Source: Lytechinus pictus
Taxonomy: Eukaryota
Direction of reading: 5' to 3'
Length of the DNA stretch: 64,000 nt
NCBI RefSeq assembly: GCF_037042905.1
Contig: NC_087253.1
Coordinates: 16,244,001 to 16,308,000 of the forward strand
The notes beneath the pieces are model-generated. The model was not told where the DNA came from, searched no databases, and saw nothing but the letters and a program-made list of their open reading frames with translations. Position numbers and translations under genes: made by a program. Below, piece after piece: positions 8,461 through 46,200 of this stretch; positions within the stretch are counted from its first letter, which is position 1; each line of letters begins with the position of its first letter.

Positions 8461-10211
8461 TTTGATCTAAAATGAGAGAACAAATACAAATACAAATTAA
8501 TAATGGTAACCACAAAGATTACGATGTGGTAAAATTATTATATAAAATTATGTGTAACATCTATTAATCACCTTTTAGGATTTTTGATCTTGTCAACAAC
8601 TTCTCTTGTCAGGGGACAGTTGACATGAATATCATCAAAAATTCAAATTTAATGATTCAGATTGATCGACCACCTAGATATATGAAGGCCCTTCTCCCCC
8701 TGCTATGTAACATTTGATGATCGATGGACAAATTATTCCGCTAAAGTTCCATATGTACCCATCACTAAAATTGAATAAAACAATTGAAAAATATGGGTAT
8801 GACTTAGAATGACATAACTAATATAAATAAAGTATACAAAATATGGGAAATCACTTTCTAAAATAACTATCTAGAAATCCATATAGTATACAAAATATGG
8901 GAAATAATATTCTAAAAATCTATCAAGTCCATCAAGATAAACTCCTACAGCTCGGCAACTAACACGTGGCCAGCCGCTGATCTCTGAATACCGGTGGAAG
9001 AAGAACTTATTCATACTTTATTTACAAGTTTCTTTTGTTATCATATCACGTGTTAATCTGTTAATGTATACAATTTTTAATACAATTTGCTTCTAGTGAT
9101 AATTTTAGAGACGGTTTAATGATCATTTAGAGATGGTAGGCCTAGAGTGTTAATTATAGAGACAGTTAATACTATAATAGTAAGGTACGCAGAGTCTGTT
9201 ACAGCTAGGGTTAGGGTTCGCAGACCCCGGCGTCCATCCTAGAGTACGCGGCCTCCTGATGACTTTGGTTGGTTAGGGATAGGACTTCGAAGTTAGAGTT
9301 GTGTATATTATTGTACTGTAATCTGTATTAACATTGTTTTATGCACTCACCGCTAGAATCTACTTATTTTAGTCTACTTCTTTTTTGTGGGGATTTTACA
9401 GGCAGACACTATTTTATATGTAGATCTAGACCCTACTCATTTGTTTCAATGTCTAGCGACATATTTCATGTCCAATTTCTGACTATGTGCGACTCCGACT
9501 GAGTGGATTATTGGCATTTGAAATAATTAATGGCAATTGTCTAGTTTCATGTCTCATGGCCTGGCCTGCCCCTGGCCATGCCTTCAAAATCAAAGTTAAA
9601 TACTTCATCAAGTTCATGCCTCATGATCATGATGACTTTGTTTGAGGCATAAGATGATGTATTAACTCTGACAGTCTGACTCCGAGTCTGATGATGATGA
9701 GTCATAATTTCATAATCATATGAGAAAAATTATGACGGCTCATGATGTATGGCACTCCTGTCCAGGCTATTGTTTTTAGTCTGTCTATTAGTATTGATAA
9801 ATTATCATCGCCAACAAAAAAATAATGATCATTCTTCAGATGGTGCAATCACAGTAGCGATGTATTTAAAAACATCGAAATAAACAGGAAATGATCAGAC
9901 GATCGAAAATCATAATTCCCAAACCCACAGAAATATAGGGATGGGACTGAATTACAAGTCACCATCACTCATCAGTTCTGTTCGGAGAAAATACCAGGAA
10001 TAAACGGTTTAAACTTTTAGCCCACCAGTACAGAATATGTCGTGTCTTAGTGCAGGCTGCTGGATATGAGGAAATTAAAATTTAAAGCAATAAATGATGA
10101 AAAACAATGTAATTTTACGCTCGGGGCGAGGCTTACCTATAATATATACTGCATGCCTGGTCCAAATGGCAAAAGCGCGCCCGGCCGATGCATTGTTGAT
10201 GATGACAGGTC

Positions 10212-10231: not shown

Positions 10232-10448
10232 CCGGCGCCGAGTCCACTTTGGTGTTACACCTACCGATTGCGGGACTGAGTCCGGACTCGGGCCGGCCTC
10301 AAACCACATCCAGAGGTGGACTGAGTCCACCTGGCCTCAGTCCGGCCTCAGTCCGGCTTTTCAAAAAAAGTTGATGTTACACATACGTCGAGCCGCCTCC
10401 GGGGCCGGCCTCAGTCCACTTGCAAACGTATGTGTAACAGGGGTCTAT

Positions 10449-10907
10449 GTCGACCTGGTTGCTACTGTCCAGAAGGACTCGTCAATGATTATCAAGCAAA
10501 CGGTAACCAATGCATCGAGTTTGCCGAGTGTCAAGAGACACCTACCTGTCCAGAGGGTATGGTATTTGAAGAATGCGGATCTGGATGTGGTCCTTTCAGC
10601 TGTGACAGCCGTCCAAGAGATATATGCCCCAAAATATGTCGCCCTGGTTGCTACTGTCCCGAAGGACTCGTCAAAGACCGGGACAATGGCTATCAATGTC
10701 TTCAGCCGAGTTCCTGTTATGAACTAAGTTCTTGTCCCCCGGGTATGGTCTATGAAGAATGCGGTTCAGGATGTGGTCCCTTCAGCTGTGATAACCTGCC
10801 TCGAGATATATGCCCACGAATATGCCGTCCAGGCTGCTACTGTCCCGAAGGCCTTGTCCTTGATGAAGATTACGGGCATCGGTGCATACCTATTGATCAG
10901 TGCCACG
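10449..10907 (+). CDS. TIL-repeat gene, 3' half of the interrupted exon (rest of TIL1, plus TIL2 and TIL3)
   Basis: Repeated CPxGMxxEECGSGCGPFSCD...ICPxICRPGCYCPEGLV...C pattern. Donor g|gtatgt at 10908. The rejoined exon is 617 nt versus 620 nt for its paralog. Confidence 0.9.
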
Positions 10908-11849
10908 GTATGTAGTTTGAGGGAATTTATATCATAGCTCTGTTTGTTGAAATGTAGATATCGGGATTGTAGTTATGAATAATTAATTGCATACGGCTAG
11001 AAGTATTTTGTCATATCCATTAACTGAAAATATTGACATGATGACAATAAACAAGTCACGAATCCATATGTGAAATCTTATTAACGCTAACAATTGGTAT
11101 ATGGAAATCCAGAAAACTTGTTGTTCCCTTCTTCTTAGGATTAGATTTAAAAAAAATCAACAGGTTTCATGGGAGAAAATTGTGTAATTTTGTAGGGTTA
11201 CTTGCAAGTTTAATTATGCAGTTGGTATCTTATCTAACGCTTTTACTTATAAATATATATTTCGAGAATATTTTTTTGTAATTGTATTAGGCCTACAAAG
11301 ACCTTTTACAACTTTGTCAATCAAATCACTTTATAAGTTGTTTCAATAGTAGAATAGATTTATAACTCTTATAGCAGCATTTGATTTAGCAAGAATAAGC
11401 TTGCATGTTATTTGTGATCGATCAAGCTGACAGCGATGAATGAAATTAAGAAAGGGTCAGTTTTATCAGTTTCTAGAATTGATAACAAAGGTTATTTGGT
11501 TTTCCGATGGCGATTAAATATTAGAAGACCAATCTCATGATTATCGTGTCGTTTAGGCGAAAATAAGACAGCAGATCTACGGATCGGGATATGATATTTG
11601 TTGGTAATCTTTATTTGGTTTAATACTTTATCTGAATCTTTTTTTTACTCAGTTTGCTCATCAATGTCTTCGTTATCCTTAAAACATTGTCAGTATTCTT
11701 ATCACCACTATTTGCATCATTATTCTCATCAGTATTATAAACATCAATATATTTAGTGTTAACCTAGTTCATAATATGTTGCCATCATCGAAATTGTCCT
11801 TTGGTAGTTCTTCTGATATTGATATGATCATCATTTAACTGATATTTAG

Positions 11850-12299: not shown

Positions 12300-12837
12300 A
12301 TCTCTCGCACCTAAGCAAGAAGAATGGATAAGTAAAAAAAATATTTTTAAAAAATCCCGCTATATTTTCAGACATTTTGTGTAATCTGTCTTGAAATATC
12401 CCTTAAAAGAACGACTCACGAAAAATCCAGCTAATATAAAAGAAATTAAAATTCAGCTAAGAATTTAAGAAATCAAGGAAATTTACATTAAAACTTCATA
12501 CAGCAAAACAAAACATGTATTCTTTTTACATGTTTGGTTAAAGCTGAGCATTCCCGGAAAGAATCATTTCGTGAATTTCACTGATAAGTTCGATGAGCTA
12601 CTGAAATCAACGCATCTTACATCGGTTGTAAGATAGTAATCCACGGTTTATAGTCCAAGGTCGAGCCTACATTGGCCTGCATAGGGCGAGCGTCTAACCT
12701 CCCTACTTGGGAGCCATTCGGTCTATCATTAATTAAATGGTGTCACAAAATTTACTCTTCTCACACATAGCACTCGCTTAAGTTAATCCTATACTCATTA
12801 AGAGGGATATCCTGGTTTGTGATTTTTGTCTATCTAG

Positions 12838-13457
12838 GCCAAACTATTGTGGAGGATGCTACGCCGATTTTTACGTTGATGGCGTCTTGGTGAACTGTTC
12901 TGCATGCCCCGAGGGTATGACGTTTGAGGAGTGTGGATCGGGATGTGGCCCTCCCAGTTGTGACAACCCTCCAAGAGATATATGTCCAAGAATATGTCGA
13001 CCTGGTTGCTACTGTCCAGAAGGACTCGTCAAGGATTATCCGTCAAACGGCAACCAATGCATCGAGCCTGCTGCGTGCCAAGAGCCATCTTCCTGTCCAG
13101 AGGGTATGATCTATGAAGAATGCGGATCTGGATGTGGCCCTTTCAGCTGCGATAACCCTCCGATAAGGGGAGATTGTCCACAAATATGTAACCCTGGTTG
13201 TTACTGTCCAGAAGGACTCGTCAAGGATCGGGACAATGGCTATCAATGTCTTCCGCCGAGTGTTTGTTATGAACCAAGTTCTTGTCCACCGGGTCTGGTC
13301 TATGAGGAATGCGGTTCAGGATGTCGTCCATTCAGTTGTGATAACCTGCCTCGAGATATATGCCCACGAATATGCCGTCCAGGCTGCTACTGTCCCGAAG
13401 GCCTTGTCCTTGATCAAGATTATGGGGATCGGTGCATCCCTGTCGATCAGTGCGACG
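12838..13457 (+). CDS. TIL-repeat gene, intact exon: second half of the NYCGGC module plus three TIL domains
   Basis: tctag acceptor, phase 2. Three 10-Cys TIL repeats. Donor g|gtatgt, phase 1. Confidence 0.92.
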
Positions 13458-14328
13458 GTATGTAGTTTAAAGGAAATATAATCATAGTTTCATTAGGTGG
13501 AATTTAAGTAGTAATACAGCTTTTTGCTAATATTGCAGACGTTCTTAAGAATATTTTTGTCAGAACGCAAGGTTTATGTCGGAATAATTATGTTCCTCTT
13601 AACGCACAAAAAGTATGGATTTAGTCATAACTTAATAGTATCCATCGACTGCCATTTCATTTACTTATGATATAAGGATTTTGTCTTCATAGTAAGTGTA
13701 TCCGTCTAGCGAGTTGTAACAGTTGAGTTTGAATAAATGTGTTAGCACTCGATAATAATATTCTAGTACACGTATGCAGGTTCTTACCCTTTGATTTCTT
13801 TAACAATTTTAAAGAATGATCGGAATCATCTGTATCTCACACGGTGAAAACACATACAATCGAGTGGCAACTAAACATGGTAAACTCGTCGGATAGCTTT
13901 TCTTCTTAAGGCTACTTTTTTTCAATTAAGAAAAGAGGGAACAATTAAACTAACCCTGAAGAAATGTTCGTTTCTTGAATGAACGAACTCATGATTTAGG
14001 CATATCATCAATTTTTCAGCATTTTGGGCCGGACTAAATTCCCGTGATGAGGGGCATCAATTTGCAGTTTGTATTCGTTTAGGGAATGGAATATTCCTGG
14101 AAATTAGATGAAAATGCGCACTTTTATAGGGGTTTAATTTAAAATCGAAATCTGTAGCTACACGTGTACAGACCATCTATATTATATTTGCAATTATATA
14201 TTTTGTCACGGAGCTTTCATTGCTTTATGAGGCAGATTAGTTGGTATGCGATCAAAGTCCCATATTTTTTTTAAATACTTGTTATAAAGGAGACGAGTAT
14301 CCGGGTCGGAGGAAGGTCGGAGTAACTA

Positions 14329-18357: not shown

Positions 18358-18530
18358 CTGACGAGTGTGACGTTGCCTTTCATTTGTGAGAATTATGCTC
18401 CTTTTGCTTGTAAATTTTAATTCCTTTGTGGCATTTTGCTATTGGCATTCGTGATAATTGTAATACCAAGCAGGCTAATTTTTTTGTATACATGTATACA
18501 CAAATGCACATACACACACAGACACACGTG

Positions 18531-18563
<33 letters not shown>

Positions 18564-18854
18564 GTATATGTATATGTATATTCTACTATTAACATATATA
18601 TATTTTTTTTTTTTGCATGGCAAATTTCTAATTCGTAACTTGCTAATGTTGATTTGAATCATATCTCTTGAACCCACGACTTCCATTGTAAAGATTTTTT
18701 TTTTTTTTTTGTGGGGGGGGCAAAATTATCTTGAATATACAGTGCTGCACCCGCCGCCACTGGTGCATTTCTGTGTAATTGAATATATGCTAAGGGGAGA
18801 AGCATTCTGCAACGGAGACAATATCACTTCTTAGTCCTCTTGCTAGACAAGATT

Positions 18855-19040: not shown

Positions 19041-19201
19041 TCTTCCAGTGTTTTTACTGGAAATTAAATTAATATAATATCACCAGATAGATATCATTCT
19101 TGCAGTCACTTTGGTCGCCAAACTTTGACTTGACCGTTCTCCAGACCAAATTGTCGTCTAAAGATTAATCTACGAGTTGGTTTTTCCGGAGTGAATAGAC
19201 C

Positions 19202-19268
19202 ATGGCGGTCCCTCTTTTGGGTGTTCTCTTGATGGGTTTTGCCGTTTCAGCTTATGCCACTTCACCTG
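19202..19268 (+). CDS. Exon 1, signal peptide [22 protein letters not shown]
   Basis: Kozak accATGG, hydrophobic core, A-Y-A cleavage motif, phase-1 donor g|gtaggt. Confidence 0.8.
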
Positions 19269-25200: not shown

Positions 25201-28200
25201 TGCTTCCCCGAGATTCGGTATCAAAATCGTCGAAATGCAAATAATATTAAATATTAAAAGTGATCATACTTCACGAATCATGTCTGCCCGGTGATATTGT
25301 TAATGATGTAACGAGCCACGGTTAAGACCTTAAAAATGAACTTGAATTGTAAAGAAATAAAAAATAAAGCTCAGTGATGCGGATTTTGACAGCTAAGGTC
25401 AAAACCTCAAACTTCTTTTGAAACCGGGAAAGATTTGGTCACTCTTATAAGAAGAAAAGTACGACGACAAAACTTTTGCAAAGATAGGTCACACAAAGTT
25501 GTTATTGTGAAGCTCAACTGACACATGATTGATTTGAATGTTTTGCGAATTGCTGAGATTCACTAGAACTGTTTTCATTGCATTTGGATAATTTCGAAAA
25601 TAAAAACAAACTTGTATATCTTTCTAAAACGTACGTTGTGTGGTTGTGTGCATGAACAGACAGGGAACTTCTATAATCGTGATAATGAAAATACAATTTT
25701 CACTAATCAAGTACGGAAAGTTCGGTCATTAAGCACTGGGGTCAAACAAATCCATTTTCAAAACTGCTACATTCTAAAGTCAAAAGGCGTTTAATATATA
25801 TATACGTTTAACATTTCACCTGTTTTTTTTTTCCATTCATATTTAAACAGAAGCTCCATGTCCGGTAACGGGAGAATGGTACGTGGATTGGGACGCCTCC
25901 TACGAGTGTCTCTCGCAGCTTTCTCAGCCATTCCCTGGTGCTATTCCCGGTCAGATCCTGCCTCTGTTGACCGTAACCGATGTCATACAAGCAGCAGGAG
26001 CGTCCTGGACCGCCGACAACCTCATTGAATCAGAAGGGGAGATATGTGTTAGGATCATACCCCAGCTCTCGGCAGCTGCGTTTGGAGCTGATATCTTCAG
26101 AGAGTACTGCGATCCTGTCCTGACGTCTTTGAGAGAGGGGACGCAGCTTGATGCAGAAGGACACTGTAGGATGATATTCAACATAACAGGGTACATGTCC
26201 TCATTCATGGGGGCTGCCATTACTCCAACACCAACTACTGATACCGAATACCCTACGGGAATCGCCGCATTACGACCTTTCGACTTTGAGGGGGTCATAA
26301 GGGACATTGTTGCCGAGCAATTCGGGATCACCAGTGACGACGTGGACGCAATCTGTAGTGCTCGACAGGTTCTAGTGGATTCTGGGTTGGCTTTGCGGGA
26401 ACTTGTCTCAAATTTCCTTGTGGCATTTGTCGAAGCTCTCATACCCAGAGCTGCGGAGATCTGTAATAGCTGGGATGCCATCAATTCGGCTATTGAGGCT
26501 GCGTCGGGTCCGTACGATTCACCACCTGAGATATTCAACGACGTGTCCGACCTAATAGCACATTTAGTAGGCTTTGAAAACAGAGAGGCTTTGTGCCAAC
26601 GTTTGAACATATCTACTTCCAGCCCACTGCTTCATCTTGCAGCTTCAGATATTGTAGGTAATATGCTCTCTGTGTTGACCGATTCTCAACATTGTTCTGC
26701 CATCGCTCAGGAGGCTATAGATCTTTCTTTGGCGTACACCCCTACCCTAGATAGAGACACGCTAAATCTTCAAATCTATCAGATAACAGGGATTAACGGC
26801 ACCGACCAGCTCTGTCAGGTTGTCGAAGACGCATTCCAGGCAGAAGGTGGGTAACACTATTATCTCATATATATATATATAATGAGAGATGGTACCGATC
26901 GAGACAAGGGATTCTAGAGGTTGTAATGGCATTATGTACTTACATGATTCTACACAGACCTGTCTTCTATCTGCATGTTTTCCCTCCATTATCTTAGAAA
27001 AAATAGAGGATCGTCACCTCTCATAAATGTGAAATCCAACTCACTTCAACCCAGTTCACCTACATGTATTATCCAGCCTTTTTCTTTATTTCCTTGTGAT
27101 GATAACAAAGTGGATATTGCAGATTGATCAGATACTTGTATGTTATTCCATTTACTTTCTACAAATCCACTGTGCCTTTCTGAAATACGGATAGCAACGT
27201 CGTGGAGGGACACGGTTTGTCTACATTGCTATGTTATGATTGTGCATGGGCCCAAAGAATACTTCAATGGTCGAAACCTCGCATATATAAAATCAAAATT
27301 ATACTTTGGTTATGTTAATTTAGTTAGTAAAGTTTGTTAGGTTAGCAAGTTTGGTTCTAATATGAAATTCCTAACATGCTTAAAGAAAATTGTTTATAAG
27401 TATACCCGTGTTCATGGTGTTACTTAAGGTTTTATCCGGTTATCAGTGTGATAACGTGCGTTTTGGGGAATCGGTCTTCTTTTGTATCACTTAGGACTTG
27501 AACATGTTGAAGGGGACGTACGCCTGGCTGATGGGTCTACTGAACTAGAGGGACGTGTTGAGATCTTTGTGAATGGCTCTTGGTCTCCAGTGTGTGACAA
27601 TTCTTTCAACGAAGAAGAGGCCGAAGTTGTTTGCCGACAGCTAGGATTTGACGCAGCAGTTGCAACGTGGTGTTGTTCGCGGTATGGATTCACCGACGTA
27701 CCGGGCGTCCTTGGCGGATTAAGCTGCACCGGGACGGAGGACAACCTTCTTGCATGTCCCCAAGATGAACCAGCCTACACCTACAATCCCTGCTATCCCT
27801 GGGCAAACGCTGGAGTCGTGTGTAGAGGTAAGTGTACAAAGCATAAGGCAAAATTTACCCTTATATATATTGGTTTATGGGTGATCTTCAGGGGAGGACA
27901 ATTTCGAGGTTACGTAACATTTGCTCCGGCGACAATTGCTCCGATAAAAAATCTGCGCTTTGAGCCAAACTCAACCTCAAACACTAAATAAATCCTAATC
28001 CTTACGTTTACATTATTCTGAGCCAAAAACTCTGGTACAGCCCTAACTCTCAACCCCATGTCCTCTGAGCTACTACGACCGGACGAATTGTCGCAGGAGC
28101 ATATGTTGTGTCACCAATCATTTTGGAATTATGTGCAACAATTAATCTAATCACGTAGTCTAAGTAAAATAAAAAATGTTAAGTGGAAATTAAGAAAAAT

Positions 28201-31200
28201 GTTTGATAAAAACAATTTCTGTTGTGAATGTTGAAACCCGTTGGACCCTTCTATAAGGATGCCATGAAGATCCCTACCCCCCCCCCCCCGCCTTCCTTCC
28301 TTCTTGAACATAGAAACACTACTACTTATCTTTTTTTATTAATTTCACAGGAGAACTTACGCCTTGCCCTCTTCCAATTGGACCAGCAATTGATTGGGAA
28401 GCGATATACGAATGTGAACTGCCTTACTTCCAAGAGTTCATACAGTCATACATCAGATACCCTCCGGTTCCCGGGGAGGTCATGCCTTTCCTCACTGTAG
28501 CAAACATTATCGACGCTGCAGGAGCCATTTGGGGATCTGACGACTTGTTCGAAGGGTTAGGCAACTTCTGCACCCTCATTGCTCCACGAGCGACAGCGTC
28601 AGCTGGTCCTGACATATTTCCTGGCATATGCGATCCTCTGATACCTTCGGCGGACGGCGTTGACTTAGATGGGTCCGTTGGTGAAGAGATATGTCGATAC
28701 ATCTACTCCTTGGCAACCCATGGACCTTACCCTGAACCTTCCTATACCGACGCTCCCTTTAGTACGACCACCATACCACCTCAAACAAGCATGAGAAGTA
28801 GCTCAACACCCGCAGTGTGGCCCACGGATTTCCCCTCGTTCATTGAATCAATAACCCCGATCATCTGCATATTCCCTCTTTCGTCCTATGATATTACCTC
28901 CGAAGGCCCTGACTTTGGCATCGACGCCCTTCAAGGATTCGACCCGGTACCTATCTTATTGCAAGCCGTCGATAACGTGCTGAACATCACGGAATATGAC
29001 CAGGACAGTTTGTGCTCTGGAGTGAATCACCTGACTGATGTTGACAACCGGCCACGTGATCTTGCGATAGAGTTCATGACGGAAGTGCTGGCAGCCCTCT
29101 TCCCAATAGGTAGTGAAATTTGCCAGGAGTGGGACAGCTTTATCGAAGCCCTGGTGGCCGAGTCTGGTAGTTACGTCGAAGTCGATCTCGGATTCCTGGT
29201 GGAAGAGATATCTGGAGTCGTTGCGCTGCTGACCGACTTCCCCGACAGGGATTCATTGTGTACGTACATCCAGACCGCTACTGCCTTGCCGGGAGAACAT
29301 GCAAACACCTTTGAACGATTCCTTGTGTTAAACGCCCTGAATGTGCTGCATGATGAAGAAAAATGTGTCTCTGTACTTGACAGCGCCCTGGCAGTCGCTG
29401 ACGCTATACCAGGAACTTCTCGGGAGGAGGTGGAAAATATCTACATGCCAATGTACAGTGGATTTACTGATATCCTTCAGATGTGCCGGTACATAAGTAC
29501 AGCTTTCGGTCCAAGAAGTAAGTTTATTTCAAACTTCCGTAATTTCATTGTTAAAATATTATTCAGTACTCGTAACTCTTGTAAACAAATTCGTTTAAAG
29601 GAACAACAAAATACATTTTATTCTATTAAAAAAACGATCATATTAGTCCAATATTCGTCCATGCACTAATGTAGGTGCCATGCCTTTATACGCATAACCT
29701 TATTCAAACGGCGATGGAGAAATGTTTTAAGCAAGTTTTAGACAATTATACAGAACTAAATTATCATAACGATAGCCTCGACGAGTGCTCAATATCATAT
29801 ATCTTTTTAGTTCAGAACATTGTTGTGAACCTATAAAATTAAGTAAAAAGTGTTCTGAACAAAGCGCAGATGAATACATTCATACAAAAGCTGCGCTATA
29901 CAAATTTATATTATTTTATTATTATTACTATTATTATTTTTCTCAAACAAGTTTATACCCTCTTTTAACAGGTTTGTTCATTAGATCGACACTTCTGTAA
30001 GGACTTTGCACTTGCTTTTTTTGTTCTACCATTCCCCATATCCACTATGTCGACCGCACATTTTGTACTTTGCCAAAGCATGGCGCAAAGAATAACAACA
30101 CGCAGGGAGCGGATGGGCAGTTTGTAAAGCGTTTGCCTTTCAGGCCAAAGATCATTGGTTCGAATCCAACCACATGTGACTGCGCGCGGATGACTAAAGC
30201 CAAGATTGTGTGCCCACGTGCCCTCCCCTGTTTCGTTCTTAGACACGGACAGGAAAAATCCATCCTCCTCGGACAGGATGTTAAGTTGAGGCCTCGTGTG
30301 GAGGGAAGTCACCACCTATGTACTCAAGGACCCACGTCACTAATCGCACACCGACAGGAGGACCCTGGTGTGGTGTTAGGCACGAACCTTATCAGTTATG
30401 TCGGGAGGAGAGCATCGCGGGTCACAATGACTCAGTTCGCGGTTCGCCTCCTAGTGACAACAAACGGAACAAAACTAATTACCATGAAGACGCGTTTCCA
30501 CCCAAACAAGTAAATTGAAATCTGGTAAAATTGTAAGAAGATTGATATGATGGACAAAGGATAATAACAATATTTTTTTCTTCCTCTTTTTTTGTTACCA
30601 CTCAAAGCGCCTCGACTTCCCATCCGGCTCGCTGACGGTAGCACTCCAGATGAAGGACGCGTTGAAGTTCAATACAACGGTACTTGGGGGACCGTCTGCG
30701 ACGATGACTTCGACGATGATGACGCCACCGTTGTGTGCCGGCAACTTGGATACCGAGGGGAAGCCATTTCACTTGGAAACTTGAATCCTGGCAGTGGTGA
30801 TATCCTTTATGACGATCTGAGATGCCTAGGGGTCGAGTCTTTCCTCGGCCAATGCCCAAATGCTGGTTTAACAATCAATAATTGTGTCCACTATGAGGAT
30901 ATCAGCGTGAGCTGCAGTCTTGAAGGTAAAGATTATTGTGATAGACGCATGGGCCACATGTTCCGAAGTCGGGTATGATTTTAACTCTGGTCTAAAGTTG
31001 TGGTTTAACTATGGATAGCAAATTTTGACACGAATCTCTCACGGTACATGCTCAGTACAATTTCTTATTTGACACTCAAATAAAGTAATAAACCATATGT
31101 TAACGGTAGCTAAAATATTTGTATTCATCATTAAAACATGATGAAAAGCACAGAAAAAAATATAAAATATAAAATGTAGATTTGTGACAAATTTCGGCTT

Positions 31201-34200
31201 GCCATATTTTCAGCCGAGATTTGGACCATGGTTTAAGTTGAACCAGACTTCAGAATGTCAGAGTACCATCTGTCGTATATAAGGTCAGTCACTGTGACTG
31301 ATTAATCCAGACATAAAGGCCTGAATTCACAAATGTGGTTTTCTGTAGATTTCCTGTATAAATTACCCTTATTTACCGCGTATATTAAACATAATGCCCA
31401 ATGCTGATGCGCGCTTTTGTCAGAGTGCGCCAAATTGACGCTGTTGCCATGGTTAAGTATAACGTATTTTATTCATGAGTCCACTGTTTGAAGAGTGGAC
31501 TCATTAATGCAAAACAGTGGACTCATGAATAAAATAGCATGGATAACCAAGGCAACAGGCGTCAAAGCCGTGCACTGTGACAAATGCGCGTATCAGCTTT
31601 GGACATTTTTTTTTATAACCGCGGTAAATGAGCGTAAATTTATACCGGACAACTTCATAAACCATGGGTTTAACCAATAGTTTAAGAAACCACCTTAATG
31701 AATTTGGGCCAATATGTTTCCTTGGTAAATGGTTATATGCAAGTTTGGCGTTTACAAGCAAAATGCTGTCCTGCCGAGTTCCTACGGGGGGTACCATAAA
31801 CAGAAATAGAATACAGTTCATGATTTATGTCTCATGTCTCTCCAAGTGTTAATTATACAAATACATGTACATATTTATATTTATTTTATTTTATTTGTAT
31901 TCTTTACTCAGGGTAGCCTGTTCAGTGGTTTAGACACTGTTGTCAACCAGGGCCCTGCACAATACATATATACATAAAACAATCAAAAGAACATATTTTT
32001 ATGAAATCGACATTGTTAAACTGCAATATGATTAGAGAGAAATTATTTGAGTACTTGAAAAATGAAGCAGTATTGGAAATTGACAGGAAAACTAGGAAAA
32101 ATTAATAGGTATGCAATACATCATCCGTCTTTGAAGGGCATTATAGAAATTGCACACGTGGAGTTCCTTTGGATCAGTTCGAACACTTTGTATGTGTATT
32201 TGGACTATTTCAAAGTAACAACTTGAGTAACCATTCTACGAAATGCCCGAGGAAAATGCGGTGCATTATATGTTTTATAGGATTGTGATAAGGATGATAA
32301 CCCATCCACTCCTCAATATCGTGGCCGATAAGCATGGCAAGCGGGTTAATAGAATTAATCAAATAAAATCATCTCAATCAATGGTAGCCGCCATTGGCAA
32401 ATTTGTATGATAGCTAAAATTAATGACAAGTCATGTGATGCATTTCAGCCAATCATTTGATTGGGATTCATATGACCACGTGAAACAGTCTAAACATATG
32501 CGAGTATATTTTTCCAGACGTCTTGAATAGTCCACATCGTCTTTATGAAGAAATGGTATCTATTTAAATGCATGGTATTCTTCTTTCCATCCTTCAGTGA
32601 CACCCCCCATTCTACCAACAACGCAGGCTTGGACAACGGAAGGTATTACTGATCTACCGACAAGACTGGTTAATGGCGGCACTGACAACGAGGGACGTCT
32701 CGAGGTTTTCTACCAAGGCCAGTGGGGCACGGTATGCGATGACTTCTGGGATTCGGATGCTACCGATGTTGCCTGCCGTGCCCTCGGCTTCCTCCGTGGG
32801 GCGAACTATTCTTGTTGTGCCGCTTTCGGCCAAGGTGACGGTTTGATTATCCTTGATGACGTAATCTGTAACGGAAACGAAAGTAGCATCGCATCGTGTC
32901 GCCACGGAGGACCGTATGTCCATAACTGTCAGCACTCTGAGGACGTCGGAATTACCTGTATCCCATATGGTAAAGGCCAACGAACGATGAGGGCGTCAAC
33001 AGAGCAACACTGCCTGTGTTGCTGCCCTGTTCGTTCGTTGGTAAAGACTTGGTAGATGCCAAACATGTTAGGAAATCATGAGCTTGCAAAATTAATGATC
33101 TTGGTTTATTCTGAAGTATAATATCGAATCAGAGTTTGATTAGGTTTCTACAAGGGGGGTCGCTGCTATCTCTTCGAAATAATCAGATATAGCTTGTATA
33201 GTTCGAGGGTATTTGGCAGCGCTCTGATTTATTTATCAATAGTGTTTCAATTATAATGGCCCGCATTTTGAGTCGGTTTTAATTTAAACTCTTGTATAAA
33301 GTTGTGGTTTAATAATGGATAGCCAATAGTAACATGAATGTCTAACAGTAAAGGTTAAATTATCAGCTCATTTGATACTCAAGTAATTATTTAGCCTACA
33401 ATGTAAACGCAATTTTGACAATTTTGGCTTCCGCTTATTTAGCACAGAATACTTTAGAATACGGGCCAATAAATGCACGTTTTGTAAGTGCATTGGTGGA
33501 AGTTCTAGAACATACATACATGTACATCAGTCGCGTAGTGGTCTCGTACTCCGTTTTCAGTGGAGCAGTGCTGCACGATTCAAGGGTATGAATCCTAGCC
33601 AAGGCGTTATTCCTTCAGTAAAAGATTCATTCTCATTGTACTGTAGTCAGCCATGTGAGGTGAAAGCATACCTGAAATGATTCAATCCCTGTATCCGTTC
33701 ATTTCTTGACAACTGCGGCTCTCAAATATATAGGCAATGTGTCAATACGGTTATTTAGACCAATTCTTTTAGGGGGCGTTGTGGCCCAGTGGATTAGTCT
33801 TCTGACTTTAAAACAGAGGGTCGTGGTGTCAAAATCCCAGCCATGGCGTAATTTCCTTCAGCAAGAAATTTATCTACACTGTGCTGCACTCAACCCAGGT
33901 GAGGTTAATGGGTACCCGGCAGGATTAATTCCTTGAATGCATGAGCGCTGAAAGGCAGCTCGAGCTAAAGCCGGGGTAATAATAAAAATGCGCATCGGAA
34001 TAGAATATTTCTAGATAGATTGCGCTATATAAATGCCTATTATTATTATTATTTTTATTATTATTATTATCATTATTATTACTATGGGACCCTCAAGGCA
34101 ACTTTTAGTAACTACCTACCTTTTCCTACCCCCTGTTCCTAGATTCGGCAACAGGAGACGTACGTCTTGTTGGAGGAAATAACCCAGCAGAGGGAAGAGT

Positions 34201-37200
34201 TGAAATTGAACATAATGGCGAATGGGGAACCATTTGCGACGACTCATGGGATTTGGAAGATGCCGGTGTTGTGTGCAGAATGCTGGGCTATCCTGCAGCT
34301 ACTGATGCTCCAGGATATGCTCACTTCGGCCAAGGTTCCGGTCCTATTCTTCTTGATGACGTGGCTTGTACGGGGGATGAGGAGAGTATCTTTGATTGTG
34401 GTAATCCGGGCATCGGTGTTAACAATTGTGGCCATTACGAGGATGCAGGAGTGGTTTGCAGCAACGAAGGTAACACTCCTTTTCAAAGGCGAAACGACCC
34501 CAACCTTTCGTTTAATAGGGAGTTTTCAGAAAGCGCCAGAGAATGAGTCCTATACATGTATATAACGTAACGATTTAATTTTGTCGATAGTCAATGAATC
34601 GGAACAGCAGATTCGTCTGACGTTTCAGAGCTGACGATACAAATTGTAAATATGTCGTGTGTCCAGAGTCACGGACGAAACTGCTCTTTCGATTATTCGA
34701 CCCTCAACAAATACCTCATTGCGATTTGACAAGCACGGCAATGCATTTTATGCGTTGTAGGGTTCATTCCGCGCCGCTGTGCAAAAAAACTCCCTAATAT
34801 ATTTAGTACAACGCAAGCCCCAATTTCGTGAGCTGTAATTGACTTTTACATCGAAACGAAGCAGCAGTTTCGTCCTGGACTCTAGAAAAACGACATATTT
34901 GCATTTATTCGTCAGTTCCGGAACTTCGGACGAACTGCTGTTCCGGTTCACCAATTTTAGATGAAATAACACCCAGCTGTTCATTGTCATTTGACGGGTA
35001 TTTTCCAATACATATACTATGTTCTAGAATTCTTTCTACGTCGCCGTGCAAAAACTCACCATGACTTCCCCTATGTACATAATCTTTGTAGTTTCATTGT
35101 TCATTTCTCCAACCCTAAGCCCAATGCGAAGGTGACATGGTATTCCAGATATGCGGTTCAGCATGCCCGCTTACGTGTGAGGATAGAGAACCGCAAAGCT
35201 GTCCACTTATCTGTGTGCAGGAATGCCAGTGTCCGGCCGGATTGTTCAGGGTTTCAGGTGACGACTCTCGCTGCGTTCCAGAGGAGGAGTGTCCATCAGG
35301 TAGGCCTATTTCTCGCCCATCTGGAAACTTTAATTCTTCTAATTGTAATATTGTATCAGAACAACAATTATTTAAGTGATAATCACGATCATCATCGTCA
35401 TCACCGCTCGCCCCATACACCGAGACCATCGTGATGATATCTGCTTTGCACGGAGCAGTGATTCACATGAAATGGCTTAATATTGATTTCCCTTCTGTTA
35501 ATCATTGTCATGCTTAGGAAAGGTGTGGAGAAACAAGTACTAAATTAAATATTAATTGTAAATCTCGTTTAAATGATGCAGTCTTAGTAAAAAGAAATGC
35601 TGGAGATGTCTGAAATTATTTTTCTTTGCATTCAGTTATGTTCTTAGATCCAGCTGGCATGAAATGGTGAAGGTTGTGCTTACTTGGGGTTAAAATGTTA
35701 ATTTGGGTGGCAAAGTTGTTCCAAATTTTAAAATGTATTTGTTTTATGTCAATTTGCTAAAAATTTCAAAGAAAAATATGCGAAATGTACCGCACGGTCA
35801 GAATCGTCTCCCATATCCTCCGAACGATATTTGGGCATGACGTAAATTACACCTTCATCCCTTATAATGTTTGCGCTCATTCACCCAAAACCTACAACAA
35901 TATGAAGGGCCATTTCAGATATATATCTCACATGACGCCCACGCTTTGGAAATTTAACAAATAGTACGGTATTTCAAGAAGCAGACTTTGGGACATCGTC
36001 TGGGCCAACCTTTTTATAAAAATAAATGTTATATAAAACAAATAATCAATGACGCGTTTCAGAGAGCTTGGTTCATTCTTAACAATGTCACGGTTTAGAA
36101 TTTGATATTCTCCATATCAATTTACTGTGTCTTGATTATAGACATCGACTCGGCAGTTGTACGTCTAGTTGGTGGAAGCAGCGATGCAGAAGGAAGGGTT
36201 GAAATTCAACATGACGGAGTCTGGGGAACTATCTGTGATGACGGATGGGGTCTGGAGGATGCCGGTGTCATCTGCAGAATGCTCGGTTTCGAGGATGCTC
36301 TCAGCGCACCAGGATCAGCTGAGTTTGGCATAGGCTCTGGACCTGTTCAACTCGACGACGTTGGCTGTTCAGGATACGAGGAAACCATCTTGGACTGCTA
36401 TCATCGCCCGATTGGTGAACACAATTGTGCTCACAGCGAAGACGCTGGGGTTGTGTGCATTCCCCAAGGTAGGGGTTACTCTTTAAGTATAGCTTCCAAA
36501 AATATACCTTCACTTTTCCGAAGAAATAACCTAAATTGACAGCGATAATAAGGATATAATAAAGCGATGACTAGTGTCTCGTGGGAGTTTTTTTTCGAAT
36601 ACGAAAAAATTAAGTCGGAAAATAGAACGATTGAGTCTACCTCGAACATGGCTATGAAGAGGACAGATCTTCTGAAGACGCTAGATTGTGTGCATTCCAC
36701 ATATTATTGGTATTCTTTTGAAATTATTGAATCACCTCTGCTAAAATCCCCCCCCCCCCCTATAAGGATCATGCCGCGTATCAAAAAGGCAGAGTGTATT
36801 AATACACTGTTCCTTTTATGTCTCGCCCTCCAGTGTTGAAGGCGAGACTAAGGGATCCGACTGTCGTCCGTCCGTCACAAACATTATGACAAATAACTCC
36901 GCAACCGTTAGTCAGTTTTCAACCAAACTTGTATCGTAGATGTACTTAGGAAACTTGCATGTAATTCTGAAATCGGAGGTCGGAGGTTTTGATTTACTTA
37001 CGCGACATGCATGTCATGGTACAGTCAGAGGTGGCACATGGTAAGGACAAAGGTCATTTTCAGATCAACATTCAAGTTTACGTGCAAGACTGTCTTATGA
37101 CACACAACTCCGCAACCGCAATTTACCTTTCACCCGAACTTGGGTTTTTGATTTACTTACGAGACCTGCATGTCATGGTACAGTCAGAGGTGGCACATGG

Positions 37201-40200
37201 TGACATCAAAGGTCATTTTCAGATCAACATTCAAGTTTACGTGCAAGACTGTCTTATGACACATAACTCCGCAACCGCAAGTCACTTTTCACACAAACTT
37301 TGGTTGTAGATGTACTTACGAGACTTGTATGTCATGGTGCAGTCAGAGGTCACATGGTAAGGCCAAAGGTCATTTAGAGGTCAACATTTAAGTTTACGTG
37401 CAAGACTCTTATGACAAATATTCTTCGATCCCAGTTATTTTACAATGAACTTTTGATACAATTCTGTTGCGTGCCATAGCAAATCACGATATTTCTGATT
37501 ACTAGACACAACATCGCTTATGCCTTGTTTATGTTGGTTATCTCATAAGCCGAAAAGACATACTCTCATACTGATATACATGTATTCATTTTTATACAAA
37601 AGTAGTTACAATATACAAATAGCGAATAGGCATGAGTGCGATGGTGCGAGATTTCGCATGAGGTGAAAGAAAGATGCTCTATTCAACGAGGCGTTAGCCG
37701 AGTTGAATAGAGTGTTTCTTTCTTTCACCGAATGCGAAATCTCGCACCATTGCACGAATAAGAATATTCGCTATTTGTGTTGTACAACGCCTCGGAAGTT
37801 AGCGAAAATATGTAAAAACAAAGAGTTTTTCCTGCAGTAATCTATTAAAAGGGAGCAAAAATATGGAAAACGAAAAGCAAAATCCCACAAGCGAACACCT
37901 CGGGCAGCATTGCGCATTTAGCCAGGCCAGCAGGCTATACGCGTATTGCACCTGCATTTTTACTGAGCGCAATGAATTGAATCGTATTGTGACGTCACCT
38001 CCTAAGCCGTGCAACGGTACATTTTGGACGGTACATTTTGGATGGTACGTCTTTTGTGCAACGGTACGAATGTTTGACATTCAGCCTCCCATTTGCTCGC
38101 GTACAACAAGCTAAGTAGGCGTTGTACAATAACAATAGGCCTACCATGAATACCGTCGAATATTTTTCATGCCTGTGAAACAGTATTTAAACTATAATGA
38201 ACTCTCCACTGTTTTCTGTGGAGAACAGGTTTGAGTTTATGACGACGACCTCTTTTTCTGTTTAAGTTTAAATGAATTTCATTTAATTTCCATTCGACGG
38301 AAAGTTTAGTGTATATACCTATGGCTCTGTAAGAAAGTTTACCCCTTCTTCACACGGCATGACGAGAGAGGTCGAAATGGTTGGTCATTCAACGCATGTC
38401 CAATTGTCCATAATTCTCCACTCATCCTGTATGTACATCCTACATTATTGTAATTTCTGCGTATTTCGAAAGGGAACGTATTCCTCGAGCGTTTGAATCG
38501 TAAATGATTAATAGTTAGGATTATATTCTATATATTTTCTAATGCAAACATAAAAGTGGTACGCCTGGTAAATGGAAACAACGAAGCTGAAGGAAGAGTC
38601 GAGATCAATCTTAACGGAGAATGGGGAACTATCTGTGATGATGGATGGGATCTGGACAATGCTAATGTTATCTGTAGAATGCTCGATTTCCAGGGAGCTC
38701 TCAGCGCCCCAGGATTCGCTCAATTCGGCCAAGGCTCTGGTCCTATCCAACTCGATGACGTCAGCTGTTCAGGAGATGAACAAACAATCTTGGACTGTTC
38801 TCATCGCCCGATTGGTGAACACAATTGTGGTCACAGCGAAGACGCTGGTGTTGTGTGCATTCCCCAAGGTAGGGGTTACTCCATTAGACTTCTCTTAGTA
38901 TAGCTTCTAGAAAATACTGCCACTCCCCCGAATGAATAACCTGAATTGACAGCGAAAATGAGGATATAATCAAGCGAAAATTATTATGTGTATAATGTTT
39001 TTCTTGACATTTTCGAAAATGTAAGGCGAAAGTAGAAAGTTTGTGTCTACCTCGAACATGGCCGTGATAAGAATAGGTCGGGAGACGCTTTAAGTTGTGT
39101 CCATTAAAATTGGTAGAGGATATCCTTATTTAAGACCATCTTCCAATCCACCCCCCCCCCCTTCACCTCGAGAAATAACTTTGAAGTCAACAGCGATCTT
39201 GAAAAGTAAAATATAGAAGGCCTGTGTCTACTTGGAACAACACCAAAAAGATGCATATTTTCTCTAGTAGAAGGTGCATGAATCTTTAAAGGTGATGTTC
39301 AATGACACAAATTAGTGAAGGATCAATGGGGAATGTGTTCATGCGGAAAACATTTTTCGTGTATTCAGGACCGAGTATGTGGAATAGCCTTCCGAGTAGC
39401 CTGAAATCTAGCCAAAGTCTTTCGACTTTTAAACGAACATTCAGAAATTTTCTTCTGAACTCCTATTGATTTGCCCTATCCGCCCCCCCCCCTTGGTTTT
39501 CGTTTTGGTAGATCTTTTTGTGTTATAGGAATTGACCTTCGAAAGGTCTTGAGGCCTATTGTTTATCCCACCACTTTCTGTTATTTACTCGATTCATAAT
39601 GTACCCCTTTTTACTCGTGTTTGAATGTATTTTTAATGTATTTTTTAATGTGTTTTTATTCTATTGTACCAGTATTTTTATCAGAATGTGGAAAATAAAT
39701 AAATCTAAAGAATCTAAAAAGATAATTGATTTATACAGATTCAACTGAATGGAACACATGTTTATATTACCCATGACTCTAATGGAAAATACAACCCTTT
39801 TCACTTCATCAGTATAAAATAGAGAAGTCGAAATGGTTGGTCTTTCAACACGAGTCCACATCCTGCATTCATCCAACTTGGCTTATTTAATGGTATTGTA
39901 GTTTGGGATAATAAAAAAGGAAACGTGTATTTCGAGCGTTTGAATCGTACATAAATATTATCGATCATGCTATCACATTTTGATACCAACATAGAAGTGG
40001 TACGACTGGTTAATGGAAACAACGACGCTGAAGGAAGAGTCGAGATCAACCTTAACGGAGAATGGGGAACTATCTGTGATGATCTCTGGAGTCTAGAGGA
40101 TGCTAATGTTATCTGTAGAATGCTAGGTTTCGAGGAAGCTCTCAGCGCCCCAGGATCAGCTCAATTCGGCCAAGGCTCTGGTCCAATCCAACTCGATGAT

Positions 40201-43200
40201 GTTACCTGTTCAGGAAATGAAGAAACCATCTTGGACTGTTCTCACCGAGGCATTCGTCAACACAATTGTGGTCACAGCGAAGACGCTGGAGTTGTGTGCA
40301 CTCAACAAGGTAGGAGATAATTTATTGAAATTATTCAACTATATCTTCTATAAAATACTACCCCTCCACCTACCCCCCCCCCCCCCCCATCGATAACGTA
40401 GATTTACATTGATGGGGATGTAGTTAAGCGATTACTAGTGTCTCATTAATTCATTTCGAATTCGAGGAGGTAAGGCGGAATGTAGAAAGTTTGTGTCTAC
40501 TAGGAACATTTCTGTTAGGAGAATAAATTTTCTATCGTAGAAATGGAAAATATGAAATGGTGTTCAACGGCAGAAAAAACGCGAAGTTGTGAAGGGGACT
40601 GCATTCATGATAGAGACGTCATTTTCTGCTTGAGTTGCGGCTTGACTAGAGAGGTCGAAATGGTGGTTCTTTCAACAAATGTCCATTGTCTTGCACTTAT
40701 CCTGTATTGTTCATCACGCATTATTGTAATGTTTGCGTATTTCAAAAGGGAACATATTTTTCGAGCATTTGAATCGTACATAATGAATATTAGGATTATT
40801 TTCTATGACTTCTAATACCAACATGATGTCTGAGGTTATTGAATGCATATTTATCCAAATAGAATTACCTGATAAAAAACAAATAGTTGTTGGAGAAATA
40901 TACAGACCCCCTAAAGGTAGTGTCCATGATTTTTTACACTGTGCTCAAAGTCTTTTGTCAATGCATGTTTTGAATAATAAAAAGGTTTTTATAATGGGAG
41001 ATTTTAATTTGAACCTGTTAGATCGTAATACCCCCTGTAATCAAGAATCTATAGATATTATGTTATCCAACTTTTGCATTCCATTAGTAACAAAACCCAC
41101 ACGGATTACAGATACGTCATCAACCTTAATTGATAATATTTTTGTTAACGATTTTTCCCATATATCATCTGGCATCTTGGTATCGGATATATCCGACCAT
41201 TTCCCAATATTTGTTGAAATTGTGTTTGATAGAGTCTCTAAAGATAACAATATTAAACATACATTTCGTGACTTATCGGATGACAATATTATTAGACTTC
41301 GAGAGAGACTGGAATTGGTTGACTGGAGTGAAATATACAATATTCACGACGTTAATGTTTGTTTTGACAAGTTTATGGACATATTTATGTCGATTTATCA
41401 AGAAACTATACCACTAAGAAAATTTTCCGATCTAATTATAAAAAAATACCAAGACTTCCGTGGGTTTCTAAATCGCTCCTGAAGTCAATAAATCGTAAAA
41501 ACAATTTATATTGTAAATACAAAAAGAATCCTGAAAATAGTCATTTAAAAAGTAAATATGTTCGTTATCGGAACGTTCTTACATCCCTGTTACGTTTAGC
41601 TAAAAAACAGTATTTTGCTAATCAATTTAATAAGTATAAAAATGATGCATCGAGTACGTGGAAGGTGATAAATAATGTTTTACAAACAAAGAAATCGAAG
41701 GAGTTCACTAAAGAAATTATAAATAATAATGTAACGGTTGTTAATCCTGCAGATATGGCTGACGTGTTTAACAACTATTTTGTTGATATTGGTGCGACTC
41801 TTTGCCATAATATTCCTGAACCTGACAAAAGATTCCAATACTTTCTAAAAAATCCCAACCCTAAAACCATTTTCCTTACTCCGATCACTGAATTTGAAAT
41901 TAAAAATATTGTAAATAATTTAAAACCTAAGAAAAGTCCTGGATGCGACGAACTTACGAATTGTGTCATAAAACGTGTCATTAATGAAATTGTAACTCCC
42001 TTGACTTTTATATTCAACCAATCTTTGGTAACTGGTCTGGTTCCTCAAAATATGAAAGTAGCCAAGGTTGTTCCAGTGTTTAAAAAAGGAGATAGACGGA
42101 TTGTCAGCAACTATCGTCCACTTTCACTCCTTACTTCCCTGTCTAAAATTCTAGAAAGATTAATCTATTCTCGTTTGACAAATTTCTTATCTGATAATCA
42201 TATTTTATGCGACTCCCAATTCGGTTTTAGAAAAAAACATTCCACTGTACACGCCTTACTTTCTTTTATTCACAAAGTGGCAAATGCTATTGATAATTCT
42301 CTGCACACAGCTGGTGTATTCCTGGACCTTTCCAAGGCCTTTGACACGATTAATCATGATATTTTGCTTTACAAGTTATCACATTATGGTGTGCGTGGAA
42401 AGGCCTTGGAATGGTTCACGAGTTACCTAACTATTAACAGAAAACAATTTGTTTCAATAGAAGACCATAAATCTCAAATGAAAACTATTTCTTGCGGTGT
42501 ACCGCAAGGATCACTCCTAGGCCCACTGCTTTTCTTGTTGTATATTAATGATTTTAATAATTCATCGAATGACCTATCATTTATTCTTTTCGCGGATGAC
42601 TCGAACCTTTTTTTGTCACACCGTAACCCTAATTTACTACTTACCATTTTGAATAGGGAATTGCGGTCTGTTCAGACATGGATTCAAGCAAATAAGTTGT
42701 CACTCAATGTAAACAAAACAAATTTTATGCTTTTCAGTAACTCTGTGAATTCTTTGCCGGACCATGTAATTATAAACAATGTTAATTTGCAACAAGTTAA
42801 TTCCACCAAATTTCTTGGTCTTTACATTGATCATGAATTATCATGGAAATGTCAAATTTATTATATATGTAAGTTATCTTCTCGTAACACTGGCATTTTG
42901 AATAAACTTAAATATTTTTTTCCTGATCACATTTTAAAAACATTATATTCTACACTTGTTTTATCCCATATGAATTATGGAATATTGGCCTGGGGTAATT
43001 GCAATACAACCTTAATTAATAAAATATTCGCGATACAAAAACGAGCAATAAGGGTGGTTAATCAAGTTGGTTTTTATTCCCACACAAACCCATTATTTTT
43101 CCAAAATAAAGTACTCAAAATTTCTGATATATATGCATTTAAAGTTGGTATATTTATGTTTAAGCTTTCAAGAGGTGAATTGCCTGATACATTTGTTTCT

Positions 43201-46200
43201 ATGTTTCAAAGGAACAATCTAATCCACACATATCCCACCCGGCTAAGTGACTCCTATCACCTTCCGCGTACTCGCACTCTCCTTGCTCAAAGAACTATCG
43301 CATTTGAAGGGCCCAGGTTTTGGAACGATCTTCCCGATGATATGGTACATAGTGCCTCACTTAATATATTCAAACGTAAATTGAAAGCGATGCTTATCAA
43401 TTCTTATAATTTCCCTTTGTAAACTTTTATATTCATGCACTTTGTTAATACGCTCTGGCCGAGTAATGAGTAATAAATAATTGTCATAGAGTGGCGGACT
43501 CTTTTTTATTTATTTTTTTTTATTTTTTTTTGTATTCCTTACACAATCGTCACATTTTTGGCATTACTTTGTTATAATCAATTTACTTACCTGTCCTCTC
43601 CTCATTAGGACCGATTTTTTTCTGGATCCTGCAGACTTAACAAGCCTTGCTTTTTTATGCAGGTTCCCTCATATTTCACTCTTTTAAATTGTCTTTAATT
43701 CCAAATCGCTATTTTGTTTAATTTGAATTAATTGTTATGCCTTGTCTGATTTGTATTCTCATAAGTTTTCTGATATTGTTTCATAATTTTGTTTGTACTT
43801 GTGAAATATGTGAAATAAAATCAAATCAAATCAAACATAGAAGGGATAAGCCTGGTTAACGGAGACAGCGAAGCTGAAGGATGGGTGGCGATCAACGTTA
43901 ACGGAGATTGGGGAACTGTCTGTGATTGACGGATGGGGTTTCTTCTTAGGGGTTATTCTTCTGATTCTTGAACTATCTTCCATCCACTTTCATATAAAGC
44001 TTGTTGTAAACCAACTGTGATCGTGAGAATATACATATTAACTTTTAATATATTGATTTTTTAGTTAGAAGAGGTAATAAGCAGAATGGAAAATTTGTGT
44101 CTGCTTGAATCATAACCTTATAAAGGACGAACATTCCCTCGTGGAAAGTGAAAGAACATAAATGGGATCAGTGACACAACATGTGCACAAAGAAGCGATA
44201 GGGCGCTGAGTTTATGACGAAGACCTCTTTTCTTTTTAAGTTTGAATTTTAATTAATTTCGATAGATTCAACGGAATGTTAGGTGTATATACCTATGGTT
44301 CTAAAGGAAAGTATACCCCTTCTCCCCTCACACGGCATGACGAGAGAGATCGAAATGGTTGGTCTTTCAGCTCATAGTCTAGATGATCGGTGCAAAAAAT
44401 AGCAAGAATTGTTCAGATTATGGTAAAAGCATGACATTTGGCTGACAGGTAGAGAAAATAGTGCTGAACATTTTTAGCAGGGGGTGCCAACCGGACCTCT
44501 TCTCGTATAGCAACAGTTGTTAGGTAACATATTTACCTTGGCAACCACCATTTTTGGGGTGTTATCTACATTTCAAAAACTATATTTTGACTTCGAAGCT
44601 CCCATTTTACAATCACATATCAAGAAACATTCCAACCATGTATAGCAACAGTTGCTAAGCAACACATTTTCCATAGCAACTATAGATACTATTACTTAAT
44701 ACAACATCTGGACATAGTGTTTGAATGAAAGTGGTTAGAAAATTGGTCAAGGTATGACTCTGGAATGAAAAAATATACCAGATCCCTAAAAAGTTCAGAG
44801 ACAGTCCAAATAATTATAATGCCTGCATAGTAGGCCTAATCTTATCTATTGGTAACAAACCTAATTTCGATATACATAATTTTACTATTTTTGCATACTT
44901 TTTACTCACACATGACAAAGCTAACACACAGACAAAAATCATGATTGGGTCATTGAATGTGCATATAGGATCTCTCTTGTTATGAAACTGAAACAGGTTA
45001 TTGTAGTGGATGTAACATGGAACACTCAGAAAAACACAGAACCTTGAGGGTAAAGGGAAGCTGAAATTTTATTGACATTAACTAATCGCTCCCAATTAAA
45101 TGACAAACCTAACCTAACAAACCTAATACATACGCACTTGTCAGTAAAATGTTGATATCATATTGACTGACTTGAACATATATGTACAGTAGACCTGAAA
45201 CAGCCTCAAGAATCATTTCCTGTAACTGCACTGTAGAGCATGTGCAGTAGACCTGAAACAGCTCAATCATCATTGTCCGTATGTATGTTGCGCCTTTTTT
45301 ATTTGATTATAATGCTGGACAGTTGAGTCATTTATTTTGCAATAGTTTCTATCTACATGTAGATAATGAATAAAAAATATTTACATAATGTACAACTGTG
45401 CAGTTTCCAGTAGTTTGGGACTTTGTGCACCATTCTAGCGAATGAATAGAACGTACATTTTATGTGTCGCACATGCCTTCACAGAGTTGGGCATATATCT
45501 AGTCCAAAATTTAGGTTAAGACTGTCTGGATTGATTATAAGTCGGGAAAAGCAAAACCACTGTAAAGCATGCATTATGCTCGACAAAGAATATTAGAGGC
45601 AACAGAGGAATACATCAAGAAAGTTACAGCCATCATCATCTTCGGTGTAACAATGAATTGTTCATCAATCAGAGTGTAAGAGACATTTCTCCTCATAAGG
45701 ACATTATATAAGGTGATAGTGCAATCAGCAAATTCATTTCCATCTGAGTTCTGAGTTACACATGCAAAAATGTATTGGAGGTATATTGAAGGAAGAAGCA
45801 TATCAGAACTTAATACTACCGTTCTGTGCCGGGGTTCTCTGGCCGAGTATGGATCACGTCCAGCCAACCTGGGGCCTGTTGCAAGAAAGAGTTGCGTTTA
45901 AACGCAAGTCCCGAACACGGGTGCTTTATTGGCTGAAAATCAAGTTGCGCAAGATTTTTTGAGTTGCGTTGATCGCAACTCTTTCTGCAACGGGCCCCAA
46001 ATATCACAAGTGCGTCATATGGTACATCCTGCAAGATCTTTCAAATAATGATCCATGAAGCTGCAGGATCCCAGCCAAAACACCTGCAATCGGAACTGAC
46101 TGGTCAAAATCAACTTCTGCGAGAGCTTTCAAGTCATGATAGATCCCGGAGCAGCAGGATCCAGGCCAACAAGCCTGGAAACAGAACTGATGGTCGGTCC

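Follow-up and report, generated by a model that had tools for sequence, protein, structure and literature searches.

The window analysed here is a stretch of 64,000 nucleotides (nt) of the Lytechinus pictus assembly (NC_087253.1, positions 16,244,001 to 16,308,000, forward strand). It carries a gene for a predicted secreted protein with several SRCR domains, probably a long array of them, in which the first SRCR domain is flanked by two large and mutually related modules, A and B, each encoded by a single exon. Here we report that these modules belong to a transcribed, conserved and unannotated domain family, describe its predicted all-alpha fold, and weigh what the module may do in the proteins that carry it. 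The parts of the gene are listed below, with positions counted from the first letter of the window.

19202-19268, plus strand: signal-peptide exon, the first coding exon, with the ATG and a 22-codon signal peptide and a phase-1 donor (G/gtaggt); mapped from the RNA contig.
25851-26846, plus strand: exon A, one complete module, predicted helical; 996 nt, 332 codons, phase 1-1, with cag before 25851 and gtgggt after 26846.
Within exon A, plus strand: N-lobe at about 25853-26206, Pro/Thr linker at about 26207-26257 and C-lobe at about 26258-26845, from matches to hidden Markov models (HMMs).
27495-27827, plus strand: SRCR exon 1; 111 codons, phase 1-1, PF00530 at an expectation value (E) of 2e-23; RNA joints 26846 to 27495 and 27827 to 28351.
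28351-29517, plus strand: exon B, the second module, predicted helical; 1167 nt, 389 codons, phase 1-1, with cag before 28351 and gtaagt after 29517.
30608-30925, plus strand: SRCR exon 2; 106 codons, PF00530 at E 5e-27; RNA joint 29517 to 30608.
32598-32969, plus strand: Pro/Thr linker and third SRCR domain in one exon; start taken from RNA, end predicted from the donor CATATG/gtaaag.
35120-35299, plus strand: predicted TIL exon within the SRCR array; 60 codons, phase 1-1, from an open reading frame (ORF) and splice sites outside the RNA coverage.
34112-63389, plus strand: at least 14 further SRCR exons, predicted by ORF scan.

The order of the first exons was read from one contig assembled from an RNA run (3626 nt, depth 185), which joins exon A, 27495-27827, exon B and 30608-30925 in succession behind 129 nt from further upstream; all the pieces skipped between them have GT..AG borders. 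The 129 nt that precede exon A have a unique placement at 19140-19268, the 5' untranslated region beginning near 19140, and the loose end beyond 30925 was placed at 32598, the start of the next exon. Once spliced, the five exons (signal peptide, A, SRCR, B, SRCR) form an open frame of 960 amino acids (aa). As the contig puts the signal-peptide exon just before exon A, module A directly follows the signal peptide and is the mature N-terminus of the SRCR protein, which bears out both the splicing to SRCR exons and the N-terminal place proposed from the letters alone. The splice support comes from assembled contigs of this single RNA run; across RNA-labelled runs of the same organism, about 0.68-0.70 of the words sampled from 25851-29517 were present, which is about the exon share there. 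SRCR exons 1 and 2 score 82.9 and 94.6 bits, respectively, against a PF00530 gathering cut-off of 26.1, and the predicted SRCR exons of 34112-63389 probably carry the gene on beyond the end of the window.

Modules A (332 aa) and B (389 aa) align from end to end with 29% identity at E 5e-43, and the coordinates, frames and splice sites agree with the pair of related single-exon modules first noticed at 25851-29517. Ten cysteines are aligned, and a Pro/Thr linker separates them into two groups of five (module A residues 3, 19, 65, 86 and 105, then 168, 204, 248, 281 and 321). The sequence-only reading had called all ten conserved, which holds for the pair; across 37 family members only eight are kept, at 65, 86 and 105 in the N-lobe and at 168, 204, 248, 281 and 321 in the C-lobe, while Cys3 and Cys19 are restricted to the SRCR-linked subfamily and exon B has an eleventh cysteine in its longer linker. 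The odd number of core cysteines per lobe (3 and 5) implies at least one disulfide bridging the two lobes.

Besides the cysteines, the conserved columns are P32, G33, P37, G49, W52, P70, P198, W207, G240, L247, T312, G313 and F328. They consist solely of Cys, Pro, Gly, Trp and hydrophobic residues, with no catalytic-type pattern among them. Both A and B carry the eight core cysteines and the motifs PG..P, G..W, P....C..W and G-x6-LC. In profile-profile comparison, residues 228-257 of module A match residues 301-330 (94%, E 1e-7), pairing G240...LC248 with G313...LC321. Three internal repeats had been claimed for the C-terminal half; two of them are thus recovered, but the tie of the first unit to the other two is weak (E 2e-3) and BLASTP self-comparison of the module detected no internal repeat. 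The N-lobe and the C-lobe can each match an HMM alone, and the linker between them is a hot spot of insertion: it accounts for about 60 aa of extra length in B and about 300 aa in some holothurian proteins, and in REJ8 it contains whole repeats.

Module A carries a net charge of -34 and module B one of -47, both within the range of -10 to -48 found for full-length modules of the family. The strong acidity noted at the outset is therefore real, but per residue it amounts to -0.10 to -0.12, close to the value for the protein's own SRCR domains, and is thus not a domain-specific clue. A special Ca2+-binding role or polyanion mimicry, for which the acidity might have been taken as a sign, was dropped on the same ground. 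The grand average of hydropathy (GRAVY) is +0.18 for A and B, with a family mean of +0.05 and values of -0.14 to -0.29 for the SRCR domains; in A and B the positive value accompanies a near absence of Lys and much Ala, Leu and Ile. Lys makes up 0.1% of modules A and B combined, the two segments for which the bias was quantified, and by eye it is absent from the SRCR exon at 38508-38900 as well; Arg is kept, and Asp and Glu are abundant. A transmembrane or pore-forming reading was also dropped: the module contains no membrane-span-like segment and no charge-free hydrophobic stretch, every hydrophobic segment holding charged residues.

A four-sequence profile searched against 1.84 billion representative proteins matched 53 of them at E<1e-3, 18 of these below 1e-30. 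Family matches have E-values from 1e-182 to 1e-4, with the profile matching over both lobes. The closest protein relatives of the window are from sea urchins. The named members of the family belong to Strongylocentrotus, Lytechinus, Diadema, Holothuria, Apostichopus, Amphiura and Ptychodera flava, so all of them are echinoderms (sea urchins, sea cucumbers and a brittle star) or the hemichordate Ptychodera, and as far as detectable the family appears limited to these two phyla. In S. purpuratus the members are an SRCR protein isoform X5 (P0003), a DMBT1-like model, LOC593369, LOC100888136, LOC100890203 and REJ8, and those of Apostichopus include a cluster holding a 'REJ 9' entry. A separate homology search with module A and the 37-sequence alignment, with a length window that left out long relatives, returned at least two ORF fragments, both on contigs with SRCR ORFs downstream. 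Members are annotated as uncharacterised or named for their other domains, and full-text literature searches by their accession and LOC numbers returned nothing.

In echinoids the module is accompanied by SRCR and TIL domains, and in urchin, sea cucumber and hemichordate by REJ; EGF, Kazal and TIG are found as well, and GPS stands beside REJ in Lytechinus only. In most members the first module comes right after the signal peptide, and two secreted forms (P0010 and P0011) consist of the module alone behind a signal peptide. The SRCR-TIL-SRCR order predicted in the window occurs likewise in the relatives P0003 and P0005; the suggestion that the head is protected by a TIL inhibitor has this predicted TIL exon, further down the gene, as its sole basis. 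Two arrays of TIL repeats (10325-10912 and 12782-13462, plus strand) lie upstream of the signal-peptide exon; as the transcript's coding start is at 19202, they probably represent a separate gene or alternative 5' exons. The S. purpuratus isoform X5 combines an A-type module and TIL repeats within one gene model.

DMBT1/gp340-type proteins share with the present gene long group B SRCR arrays on phase 1-1 exons, and relatives of the gene are automatically named 'DMBT1-like'. The SRCR domains of DMBT1 are paired with CUB and ZP domains, and DMBT1 is not known to have a helical head; the exhaustive profile search found no vertebrate protein with the module. The N-terminal regions of S. purpuratus REJ8 (NP_001075437) and of REJ9-like proteins are true homologues with the same core cysteine pattern. 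The REJ8/9 homologous region was reported without a known domain by Gunaratne et al. 2007 (PMC1934368), and no other published comment on it was found. With locally iterated HMMs, REJ8 (P0012) shows one N-lobe and five C-lobes over residues 47-1645, upstream of the REJ domain, and other proteins show up to eleven C-lobes; the iteration database held 86 fetched proteins only, so the E-values are rough. The C-lobes of REJ8 are spaced about 320 aa apart, and the spacers may be degenerate N-lobes. The module thus accounts for more than 1,600 residues of REJ8-type relatives of polycystin-1. In REJ8 it forms an array on a membrane protein, whereas in the window two copies are interleaved with SRCR domains on a signal-peptide protein. 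A tandem array of this kind, placed outermost on polycystin-1-like receptors of the REJ8/9 type, is the widespread setting of the module, and may perhaps be the ancestral one.

No Pfam family matched A, B or any of the 37 members at E<=1, and no PDB sequence was matched by a single sequence or by the family profile, the best candidate being a CheA helical bundle at E 0.014. AlphaFold2 run with four sequences gave a mediocre model with a predicted local distance difference test score (pLDDT) of 65, which was replaced by a run with 37 sequences (pLDDT 90.6, predicted template modelling score 0.87) containing 16 helices and one short strand pair; the helical character proposed earlier is thereby supported at the level of a model. 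This model found nothing in PDB by Foldseek (best E 0.9, template modelling (TM) score <0.2), no structural match among Swiss-Prot models, and nothing above TM 0.31 in shape searches of the ESM Atlas, where a feature search gave an uninformative top score of 0.71. Among AlphaFold DB clusters three matches were significant, all of them family members (A0A7M7P0B2, which is S. purpuratus LOC100890203, and two Apostichopus proteins), and the others had E>0.5.

On these models we confidently regard the module as a predicted all-alpha, two-lobe fold with no detectable relative, in keeping with the first impression of an unrecognised domain: no match to a described domain appeared. As no database profile, solved structure or published description was found, the module counts as undescribed both as a domain family and as a predicted fold, the case for a new fold being strong but not proven. 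With a confident model and no relative in either PDB or AlphaFold DB, it is a candidate for experimental structure determination and for an entry of its own in Pfam/InterPro.

The evolutionary route can be approached through exon structure. In S. purpuratus LOC593369, too, one phase 1-1 exon (L001:3581-4591) encodes the module; its neighbours are a signal-peptide exon on one side and an EGF exon on the other. As a single phase 1-1 exon the module could be shuffled, and this indicates how it would have travelled between receptor families. In a quick, unrooted maximum-likelihood tree built from 25 complete modules, the SRCR-linked ones fall into one group with moderate support (83 in the Shimodaira-Hasegawa-like approximate likelihood ratio test, SH-aLRT). 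Two subclades starred in the tree lie in this group, an A-type one with window A and S. purpuratus P0003, and a B-type one with window B, S. purpuratus P0004 and Diadema P0006. The tree fits one capture of the module into echinoid SRCR genes followed by an A-type/B-type duplication. Domain order is not the same in all species: S. purpuratus has its A-type and B-type modules in separate gene models, which are arranged differently. Identity to S. purpuratus is 61% for SRCR1, 49% for module B, 72% for SRCR2 and 65% for module A; judged by these values, module B is changing faster than the neighbouring SRCR domains.

The explanation we favour, and hold to be probable as a whole, is that A and B each represent one copy of a previously undescribed extracellular domain that serves as a recognition or adhesion head. 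The domain would comprise about 310-390 aa, all-alpha, with three conserved cysteines in the N-lobe, five in the C-lobe and a variable Pro/Thr linker between them. A shuffled phase 1-1 exon would have been recruited once into echinoid SRCR genes and then duplicated. Its rigid, disulfide-stapled helical scaffold would combine a conserved core with a quickly diverging surface, and the module would form the outermost head, for recognition or adhesion, in secreted SRCR proteins as well as in REJ-type receptors. Such a role is suggested by the N-terminal position, the tandem arrays, the purely structural nature of the conserved residues and the faster divergence. The Duffy-binding-like (DBL) domains of Plasmodium and the N-terminal domains of trypanosome VSG are likewise extracellular helical domains of about 300 aa, with conserved cysteines and variable surfaces, that form the outermost recognition or coat modules, DBL domains often in tandem. 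The likeness is one of analogy only; the organisms belong to different kingdoms, and no search gave any sequence or fold similarity to them.

A further-reaching version seems possible but less likely than not: that the module is a truly new fold and the ligand-sensing outer tip of one branch of polycystin-1-like receptors (REJ8/9) of echinoderms and hemichordates, later exon-shuffled into the urchin SRCR immune repertoire, where a fast-changing surface would give specificity. If true, the module would be a helical counterpart to Ig-type or DBL-type variable scaffolds. Sea urchins have among the largest known innate immune gene repertoires, with hundreds of SRCR genes, and to our knowledge the source of SRCR-protein specificity in these animals is largely unknown; the module gives the N-terminal heads of some urchin SRCR proteins a defined, testable structure.

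Several points weigh against the favoured explanation or its further-reaching version. With no root on the tree, the direction from REJ to SRCR proteins is inferred from taxonomic spread, and the faster divergence could come from relaxed constraint and not from a shifting specificity. The fold is a prediction, and its disulfides and lobe packing are putative; helical folds are a weak point of structural aligners, so that a distant relative could be missed. In raw RNA-seq data of the species, three runs contained zero reads of exons A and B, which implies expression restricted to some tissues or stages.

Among the competing explanations, the one that survives best would make the module chiefly an assembly or spacer element, which oligomerises or stiffens the protein and holds out its SRCR or REJ parts but is not itself specific for any ligand. 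It would account for the 3 to 11 modules that REJ-type proteins carry in tandem and for conservation confined to structural residues, and the odd number of cysteines per lobe could permit inter-chain disulfides. We think it unlikely, since the outermost N-terminal place in most members is more typical of recognition parts, and the secreted forms that consist of the module alone (P0010 and P0011) also speak against a spacer.

The sequence-only reading had compared the module to saposin-like proteins such as NK-lysin and amoebapore, and had suggested an effector head that binds lipids or membranes; on this reading it would attack or sense the membranes of microbes. Those proteins are also secreted, helical and disulfide-stapled, as the module is predicted to be, and the GRAVY of A and B is rather high for a secreted domain. 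The saposin-like fold, however, has six cysteines forming three nested disulfides within about 80 residues, in a fixed pattern, whereas the module is four times larger and its 3+5 core cysteines are spread over about 260 residues of some 330 aa, with an odd count per lobe. A, B and the 37 members gave no SapA, SapB_1 or SapB_2 hit at E<=1, and no saposin, NK-lysin or amoebapore structure appeared among the Foldseek or VIA-align results; the saposin-like reading is accordingly not supported. An effector function of this kind also seems improbable to us: the acidity, its main cue, belongs to the protein as a whole, the family mean GRAVY is close to zero, transmembrane-like segments are lacking, the positive values of A and B go with their Lys-poor, Ala/Leu/Ile-rich composition, and a place in the ectodomains of REJ-type receptors is not suggestive of a lytic role.

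It is equally improbable that the module belongs, as a highly diverged member, to some known superfamily of helical extracellular domains missed by the searches (for example albumin-like, or the helical part of GAIN). Helical folds easily converge and diverge, and the VIA-align documentation states that matches between them are often scored too low. Nevertheless, no signal above noise came from five independent structure libraries or from two profile searches, and no serum-albumin-like or other known helical extracellular domain was matched by profile or fold outside the family in Pfam, PDB, AlphaFold DB or the Atlas.

The surroundings of the modules show further features. Within the SRCR array, 52000-59183 consists of a unit of about 3.6 kb with three SRCR exons, duplicated in tandem (52000-55593 and 55594-59183). 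The copies are 99.8% identical across the first 1.7 kb and 95% identical across the remainder, which points to a very recent expansion of the array or possibly to an assembly artefact. Two non-LTR (long terminal repeat) retrotransposons are inserted in introns of the array: one at 40787-43419 (plus strand) with an endonuclease-like ORF and a reverse-transcriptase-like ORF of 684 aa, the other at 49865-51886 (minus strand) with an ORF of 674 aa. A microsatellite of TA/TG type occupies 18383-18725, a few hundred bases 5' of the transcript start, and transposase-like ORFs together with a Myb/SANT-like ORF are found at 782-2761 (plus strand) and 7852-8466 (minus strand).

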